DNA of 9,367 nt, taken from Octopus sinensis. Its lineage: Eukaryota. This document shows, in pieces, positions 5,430 to 6,654 of this stretch. The translations under genes and the position numbers were made by a program. Location: positions 1 through 9,367 of the forward strand of contig NW_021827966.1 in assembly GCF_006345805.1 (NCBI RefSeq), written 5' to 3'. Position 1 is the first letter of the stretch. Each line of letters starts with the position of its first letter. The notes beneath the pieces are model-generated. The model made no database searches, was not told where the DNA came from, and was given only the letters and a program-made list of their open reading frames with translations.

Positions 5430-6654
5430 GGATATAACATGAATGTGTCTTTATGGTCTGGAAAGGATATAACATGAATGTGTCTTTATGGTCTGGAAAG
5501 GATATAACATGAATGTGCTTTTATGGTCTGGAAAGGATATAACATGAATGTGATATTATGGTCTGGAAAGGATATAACATGAATGTGCTTTTATGGTCTG
5601 GAAAGGATATAACATGAACGTGTCGTTATGGTCTGGAAAGGATATAACATGAATGTGCTTTTATGGTCTGGAAAGGATATAACATGAATGTGTCTTTATG
5701 GTCTGGAAAGGATATAACATGAATGTGTCTTTATGGTCTGGAAAGGATATAACATGAATGTGTCGTTATGGTCTGGAAAGGATATAACATGAATGTGCTT
5801 TTATGGTCTGGAAAGGATATAACATGAATGTGTCTTTATGGTCTGGAAAGGATATAACATGAATGTGTTTTTATGGTCTGGAAAGGATATAACATGAATG
5901 TGCTTTTATGGTCTGGAAAGGATGTAACATGAATGTGCTTTTATGGTCTGGAAAGGATATAACATGAATGTGCTTTTATGGTCTGGAAAGGATAAAACAT
6001 GAATGTGTCTTTATGGTCTGGAAAGGATATAACATGAATGTGCTTTTATGGTCTGGAAAGGATATAACTTGAATGTGCTTTTATGGTCTGGAAAGGATAT
6101 AACATGAATGTGCTTTTATGGTCTGGAAAGGATATAACATGAATGTGTCTTTATGGTCTGGAAAGGATATAACATGAATGTGCTTTTATGGTCTGGAAAG
6201 GATATAACATGAATGTGTCTTTATGGTCTGGAAAGGATATAACATGAATGTGCTTTTCTGGTCTGGAAAGGATATAACATGAATGTGCTTTTATGGTCTG
6301 GAAAGGATATAACATGAATGTGCTTTTATGGTCTGGAAAGGATATAACATGAATGTGTCTTTATGGTCTGGAAAGGATATAAGATGAATGTGCTTTTATG
6401 GTCTGGAAAGGATATAACATGAATGTGTCTTTATGTTCCGGAAAGGATATAACATGAATGTGTTTTTATGGTCTGGAAAGGATATAACATGAATGTGTCT
6501 TTATGGTCTGGAAAGGATATAACATGAATGTGTCTTTATGGTCCGGAAAGGATATAACATGAATGTGTCTTTATGGTCTGGAAAGGATATAACATGAATG
6601 TGGCTTTATAGTCTGGAAAGGATATAACATGAATGTGTCTTTATGGTCTGGAAA
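5430..6654 (+). repeat. Minisatellite: exactly 35 copies of a 35-bp unit GGATATAACATGAATGTG(TCT/CTT)TTATGGTCTGGAAA
   Basis: Units stay in register with no indels (1225 bp = 35 x 35) and there are no spacers. Both flanks continue transposase sequence (GTGACAGG... upstream; ...GAAACAAAAGCGCAGTCC = ETKAQS downstream). Confidence 0.98.

Follow-up and report, generated by a model that had tools for sequence, protein, structure and literature searches.

What is the source of a 35-bp minisatellite that interrupts the remnant of a transposase in the octopus genome, and did it grow before or after the transposon around it had died? The window analysed here is a stretch of 9,367 nucleotides of Octopus sinensis DNA. 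An earlier note on it, made from the letters alone, had traced the array to the catalytic-site codons of a mariner transposase.

The array and its units

5430–6654, + strand: minisatellite, 35 x 35 bp (Tandem Repeats Finder, unit table, pattern search, variant analysis)
5431–5433, + strand: GAT codon in unit 1, homologous to the first catalytic Asp (Mos1 D156; P0001 D158) (Mos1 alignment, P0001 motif positions, unit table)

The array was described in the earlier note as 35 units of 35 bp without indels, and three procedures reproduce that description. Tandem Repeats Finder reports a period of 35, 35.0 copies, 94% matches, 0% indels and a score of 2121. Slicing 5430–6654 into 35-mers gives 35 head-to-tail units in register, and a pattern search of the whole window returns 35 matches to the unit at three or fewer mismatches, all within the array (shuffles: 0 in 200). 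The phase of the array is unambiguous because the bases on both sides fail to continue the unit: a G precedes the array where the unit ends in A, and a C follows it where the unit begins with G. In the flanking frame the unit reads, after a leading G, GAT ATA ACA TGA ATG TGT CTT TAT GGT CTG GAA and a final A, which translates as D I T, a stop, and then M C L Y G L E; ...FSDLVTG stands before the array, and TKAQSVE and a stop come after it. This is the translation and the placement, between LVTG and TKAQSVE, that had been claimed. The sequence at the junction of one unit with the next is TTATGGTCTGGAAAGGATATAACATGAATGTG. The GAT codon is intact in 35/35 units. On the minus strand an open reading frame spans the array junction (5194–5475), and no exact protein match to it is on record.

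The units are not all alike. Fourteen distinct variants occur in a non-periodic order, with singletons throughout. Variant A (..GTGTCTTT..) is exact in 11 units (1, 2, 8, 9, 12, 21, 23, 27, 31, 33 and 35). Variant B (..GTGCTTTT..) is reached from A by two substitutions; it lies within units 3–28 and occupies 15 units, 11 of them as exact copies. Units 13 and 30 carry a TT form intermediate between the two.

The unit and the catalytic core of the transposase

The translation stitched from the flanks matches the Mos1 transposase structure 3hos (E = 1.8e-5). The alignment places LVTGDIT* on IVTGDEKW and the GAT codon of the unit on Mos1 D156, the first catalytic aspartate. A homology search with the same translation found a far closer match in P0001, an intact protein of 348 aa (E = 2.7e-58) that passes Pfam HTH_48 and Transposase_1, and a second close relative in P0002, of 243 aa. 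These matches bear out the claim that the array lies in a dead mariner transposase. Both relatives read FSDLVTGDETW(A/V)YLYDPETK(N/A)QSMEW where the window has FSDLVTGDIT*MCLYGLETKAQSVE*. The catalytic residues of P0001 are D158, D252 and D287, with 34 residues between the second and the third (DD34D), and the unit corresponds to codons D158–E168 of this protein (DETWAYLYDPE) plus 2 nt. The unit therefore holds the first Asp of the DD34D triad, as had been proposed, its codon aligning with both Mos1 D156 and P0001 D158. TGDExW shows no variation among 108 family members, in which YDPE has its P and its E conserved at 94–98%. The three raw frames of the remnant and the stitched translation gave no Pfam hit at E ≤ 0.01. 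The remnant is too broken for Pfam thresholds, and its homology was therefore established through the PDB and the close relatives.

Four DNA relatives of the element (L001, L002, L003 and L004), taken from public assemblies as contigs of 1,155–1,306 bp, show the state without an array. When the array is collapsed to one unit and aligned, the 35-mer is single-copy in 4/4 relatives and both array junctions are gap-free. Collapse thus restores continuity, and the relatives carry the one unit that had been predicted for other mariner copies. The earlier note had named failure of the unit to align to the DETW region of the family as a result that would sink its proposal; the unit does align there. 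The array combines units of 10–100 bp set head to tail with one-copy homology to a parent transposable element (TE) at a colinear position, and the designation TE-derived minisatellite fits every feature that could be tested. The word satellite, used in the earlier note, overstates evidence that shows one minisatellite locus of 1.2 kb.

The host element and its ends

4824–8017, + strand: host, a decayed mariner-like element of 3,194 bp (alignment to L001–L004, termini, TA duplications, decay count)
4822–4823, no strand: left TA target-site duplication (TA abuts the 5' terminus; homology with the L002 5' flank begins just past the TA)
4824–4851, + strand: 5' terminal inverted repeat, outer 28 nt (19/28 inverted match to 7990–8017)
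7990–8017, + strand: 3' terminal inverted repeat, outer 28 nt (19/28 match to 4824–4851)
8018–8019, no strand: right TA target-site duplication (TA abuts the 3' terminus)
7199–7982, no strand: nested insertion cluster in the host 3' terminal inverted repeat region (direct and inverted repeats; joining the flanks restores the host 3' end)

Judged from its transposase homology, its terminal inverted repeats (TIRs) with TA duplications and its length, the host is assigned on sequence grounds to the mariner family. Without the 34 extra units and the nested insertions of MITEs it measures 1,222 bp, which, like the contigs of the relatives, agrees with the mariner length of about 1.3 kb. The figure of 19/28 given earlier for the TIRs was obtained again, between 4824–4851 and the reverse complement of 7990–8017 with TA on both sides, and this match is unique: it is the sole score of at least 19 among 961 TA-adjacent 28-mers in the window, whose mean is 7.8. 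TIRs in this family are long, about 90 nt, as seen in the two ends of L003 and in the L002 flank, and the host 5' repeat reaches inward to ~4930.

Two other placements of the ends were considered and rejected. A host 3' end at ~7200 is ruled out by the long TIRs of L002 and L003, which put the terminus at 8017, past the nested cluster. The inverted contig ends of L001 are the inner part of the longer TIRs rather than the TIRs of the element. The Logan contigs of L001 (1–1155) and L003 (1–1306) stop inside the long TIRs of the family, and the ends of L001 form a perfect inverted repeat of 30 nt, set inward from the true termini. The L001 contig end is probably an assembly break at this inverted repeat and could mislead TIR calling for the family.

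The nested cluster begins at a TA (7199–7200) and continues with half of an Hsmar1-type MITE (7201–7357), (TA)n, a palindromic element (~7420–7680) with 74-nt arms at 7429–7502 and 7588–7661, (TA)n again, a full MITE (7744–7980) and a closing TA (7981–7982). The MITE is about 235 bp long with Hsmar1-like termini (TTGCGTTGGTGCATAATTACTGCGGC), and its half and full copies are 91–96% alike. Its 5' half is duplicated around the palindrome. When the flanks of the cluster are joined, the restored 3' end aligns to the host's own 5' end and to L002 and L003.

Decay of the transposase gene

4966–7165, + strand: transposase coding remnant, interrupted by the array (codon-wise alignment to the L001 CDS, tblastn with P0001 and P0002, Mos1 alignment)
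5381–5406, + strand: perfect 12-bp tandem duplication (ATTTGAAACCAC x2.2), 24 bp upstream of the array (Tandem Repeats Finder; +3/+1 insertion relative to L001–L004)
6785–6803, + strand: perfect 10-bp tandem duplication (CTGGAATGTT x1.9) (Tandem Repeats Finder; 10-nt insertion relative to L001–L004)

The host had been called heavily decayed, and the counts agree. Against the intact L001 CDS the remnant has 15 stops at homologous codons and, in ~1.1 kb, 16 indel events, 13 of them frameshifting. Nucleotide divergence from the L001 coding sequence is 26% (Jukes-Cantor 0.32), part of which could have arisen between subfamilies and not through local decay, and identity to the relatives is 73–77%. 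The substitutions are strongly AT-biased, with 68 G>A and 59 C>T changes against 26 A>G and 18 T>C. Of the DD34D triad, the window copy keeps the first Asp codon (35 times) and the third, and has lost the second to a 6-nt deletion near 6909. The host also lacks about 70 nt of the relatives (7159–7198 against L001 1085–1155 and the L003 3' end), which comprise the last ~9 transposase codons, the stop codon and the inner part of the 3' TIR; this deletion may have occurred between two ATG(T)GCA-like motifs.

The 12-bp and 10-bp duplications of the remnant are absent in 4/4 relatives. Together they indicate that such events recur in this remnant and that the 35-bp one alone expanded.

Timing of the expansion

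Variant A agrees with all four relatives at positions 19–20, which identifies it as the ancestral unit and B as derived from it through the TT intermediate. Compared with the 35-mer of the relatives, variant A differs at 9/35 sites (26%, 95% CI 12–43%), and the host-wide figure is also 26%. Private differences among the units, in contrast, amount to 17/1225 (1.4%, CI 0.8–2.2%), about 5% of the host divergence. The edges of the array are undegenerate, units 1, 2 and 35 being identical to variant A. The load of the unit, equal to that of its host, the small number of private changes and the state of the edges argue for a late, local and post-mortem expansion. On the most economical reading of these sequences, the segment would already have borne nearly the full mutational load of the host, including GAA>ATA and TGG>TGA, before the common ancestor of the units.

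The proposal that the array is much younger than its host holds on these figures. Its companion, that the array was amplified after the death of the element, is the parsimonious account of the load and the edges but does not follow of necessity, since mutations of later date can be carried through an array by homogenisation. An unlikely alternative takes this route. It makes the array old, with concerted evolution maintaining its uniformity; an early 35-bp duplication was perhaps the frameshift that killed the transposase, and the TGA and ATA codons arose later in single units and were swept through the rest. Homogenisation does operate here, as the spread of a variant two substitutions from A through 15 units attests. 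Moreover, 5/17 private changes coincide with the ancestral base (P = 0.01–0.12, by assumed transition bias), which could hint at an older array still undergoing homogenisation. The alternative nonetheless requires nine separate substitutions each to sweep to near-fixation. Edge units of old arrays are normally degenerate, yet those of this array are of the ancestral variant, and its 1,225 bp hold 0 indels against the 16 events in ~1.1 kb of host.

It is highly unlikely that the array formed in a progenitor copy, as part of a non-autonomous mariner subfamily that is mobile, and spread by transposition to many loci. Tc1/mariner MITEs with internal tandem arrays of variable length are documented (Xenopus miDNA4, as cited in PMC12628747), and the termini of the host are recognisable. 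However, more than one unit is present in 0/4 relatives, the TIRs match at only 19/28 positions and the units are far younger than the host. A recent move is improbable for an element in this state of decay whose TIR region holds a nested insertion of 780 bp. The junction 32-mer is absent from JGI metagenome contigs, an uninformative result in a collection that is not expected to hold an animal genome.

In-place origin, copy number and polymorphism are read here from one assembly. That the true allele has few units or some other number, the 35 copies coming from mis-assembled repetitive reads, is most improbable: copy number is the feature of tandem arrays that assemblers most often get wrong, but 14 unit variants in non-periodic order with scattered singletons are unlike the artificial expansion of one unit, and both junctions are clean and colinear with the relatives.

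Mode of growth

The order of the variants carries a record of how the array grew. The derived B units are central in the array (P = 0.012), identity between units is higher at even lags than at odd ones (P = 0.007), and it peaks at a lag of four units (0.959, P = 0.01). Rare variants come back at fixed distances: units 6 and 10 share T21G, and units 29 and 32 share T30C. A simple runs test finds the order of A and B units random; the structure appears in the lag-based and position-based tests only. These patterns suggest that expansion took place partly in blocks of 2–4 units, through unequal exchange or gene conversion beyond single-unit slippage. Slippage driven by hairpins is unsupported, as three units folded as DNA do not outperform shuffles on either strand (z = +0.6, +1.2). 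The array junction shows no microhomology.

Taken as a whole, the array is probably a locus-specific minisatellite, formed where it now lies out of 35 bp of transposase sequence that had no function. As the locus itself records, its history begins with the insertion of a mariner of ~1.3 kb at a TA, followed by decay through stops, frameshifts and AT-biased substitutions, with loss of the second catalytic Asp codon. Late in this decay the 35-bp segment, codons D158–E168 plus 2 nt, would have been tandemly duplicated in an initiating event that did not use junction microhomology. Once two copies existed, out-of-register pairing could have raised their number to 35 through replication slippage, unequal sister-chromatid exchange or gene conversion, and the variant patterns suggest that part of this growth came in multi-unit steps. 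The array is without function of its own, and the catalytic Asp codon is kept only as a fossil.

Surroundings of the host element

8685–9015, + strand: probable terminal coding exon with a Spätzle/NGF-type cystine-knot domain (Pfam Spaetzle PF16077, PDB Spätzle chains)

The earlier note placed the array inside a gene intron. A Spätzle-like terminal exon lies ~2 kb downstream of the array on the same strand, in agreement with this claim; no upstream exon was seen. The exon is a cysteine-rich open reading frame that scores 35.7 bits against Pfam Spaetzle PF16077, above the curated cut-off of 27, and matches the PDB Spätzle chains 7b1c and 3e07 (Aedes and Drosophila Spätzle structures). A polypyrimidine tract precedes an acceptor-like site, the candidate acceptor cag being at 8682–8684; the stop codon is at 9013–9015 and an AATAAA at 9073–9078. 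An RRETR dibasic-type motif stands just ahead of the first cysteines. A word-index protein search found no relative of the exon peptide, and the gene may be unannotated or divergent. Because this exon, with its polypyrimidine tract and acceptor-like cag, lies downstream, an intronic position of the mariner and its array is plausible from the sequence.

A repeat at ~8040–8480 on the + strand, broken up by (TA)n/(TG)n, has a tRNA-like head with A-box and B-box-like motifs at ~8050–8110 and resembles a tRNA-derived SINE. Part of its tail recurs in inverted orientation at 9292–9367 on the - strand, the arms (8420–8486 and 9292–9361) being 85–92% complementary. Neither ARAGORN nor Rfam found RNA genes in the window.

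Microsatellites are dense in the window (113–243, 1714–1849, 3134–3249, 3658–3763, 3825–4230 and 4549–4623), examples being 102 copies of (TATC)n at 3825–4230 and (AAT)45 at 1714–1849. This exceptional density marks the region as slippage-rich, which fits the birth of a minisatellite there.

In a further reading the array is an early stage or a member of a dispersed satellite family seeded in this lineage from the catalytic-core codons of this mariner, or else a length-polymorphic VNTR that influences the splicing or expression of a Spätzle/neurotrophin-like gene from within its last intron. This broader role is quite unlikely.

Comparison with known systems

The closest precedent is the CficCl-61-40 satellite of Chenopodium, for which a ~40-bp piece of the tnp2 transposase domain, from the CACTA-like element Jozin, supplied the start monomer (PMC7320549). 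In both systems a monomer of ~35–40 bp comes from the transposase coding DNA of a DNA transposon, and the array starts at the transposase fragment. They differ in scale and in source: CficCl-61-40 derives from a CACTA element of plants and is the most abundant satellite family of its genome, with many loci, whereas the octopus case involves a mariner, an animal and the single 1.2-kb array described here.

More broadly, 7,276 human minisatellites are TE-derived, and cases derived from open reading frames include L1 ORF2 and CR1 ORF2 (reviews PMC9659126, PMC12628747). The reviews also include tandem repeats derived from middle portions of DNA transposons, while the predominant TE sources they give are non-coding parts (TIRs, LTRs and UTRs) and non-autonomous elements (PMC12628747, PMC9659126). 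The octopus array resembles TE-derived minisatellites in general in that an internal segment expands locally, by slippage or unequal exchange, in an inactive copy. Unlike most of them, it has its source in the catalytic-core coding region of an autonomous-type mariner.

The Tc1/mariner superfamily has been linked to tandem repeats before. The two reviews describe the Xenopus miDNA4 MITE with an internal satellite and the heterochromatic Bari1 cluster of Drosophila (PMC12628747, PMC9659126). Both share with the octopus array this link to the superfamily, and each departs from it in its unit. In miDNA4 a captured or internal repeat resides in a mobile MITE, and Bari1 clusters are tandem whole elements; the octopus unit is a 35-bp sub-fragment of an open reading frame, in a host that is immobile.

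Significance

The birth of minisatellites and satellites from dead transposons, transposase-coding DNA included, was already established, so the array changes no concept. The locus can serve as a teaching example and possibly as a VNTR marker. It also calls for caution in annotation, since most of the length of this 3.2-kb "mariner" is array and nested MITEs. The expected consequence of the array is length instability (VNTR) in what is plausibly an intron. The array adds an animal mariner case, drawn from catalytic-core coding DNA, to a class whose TE sources are mostly non-coding. It offers a legible snapshot of the birth of a tandem repeat, in which one locus gives the parent, the two junctions, the ancestral as well as the derived variants, and the relative timing.
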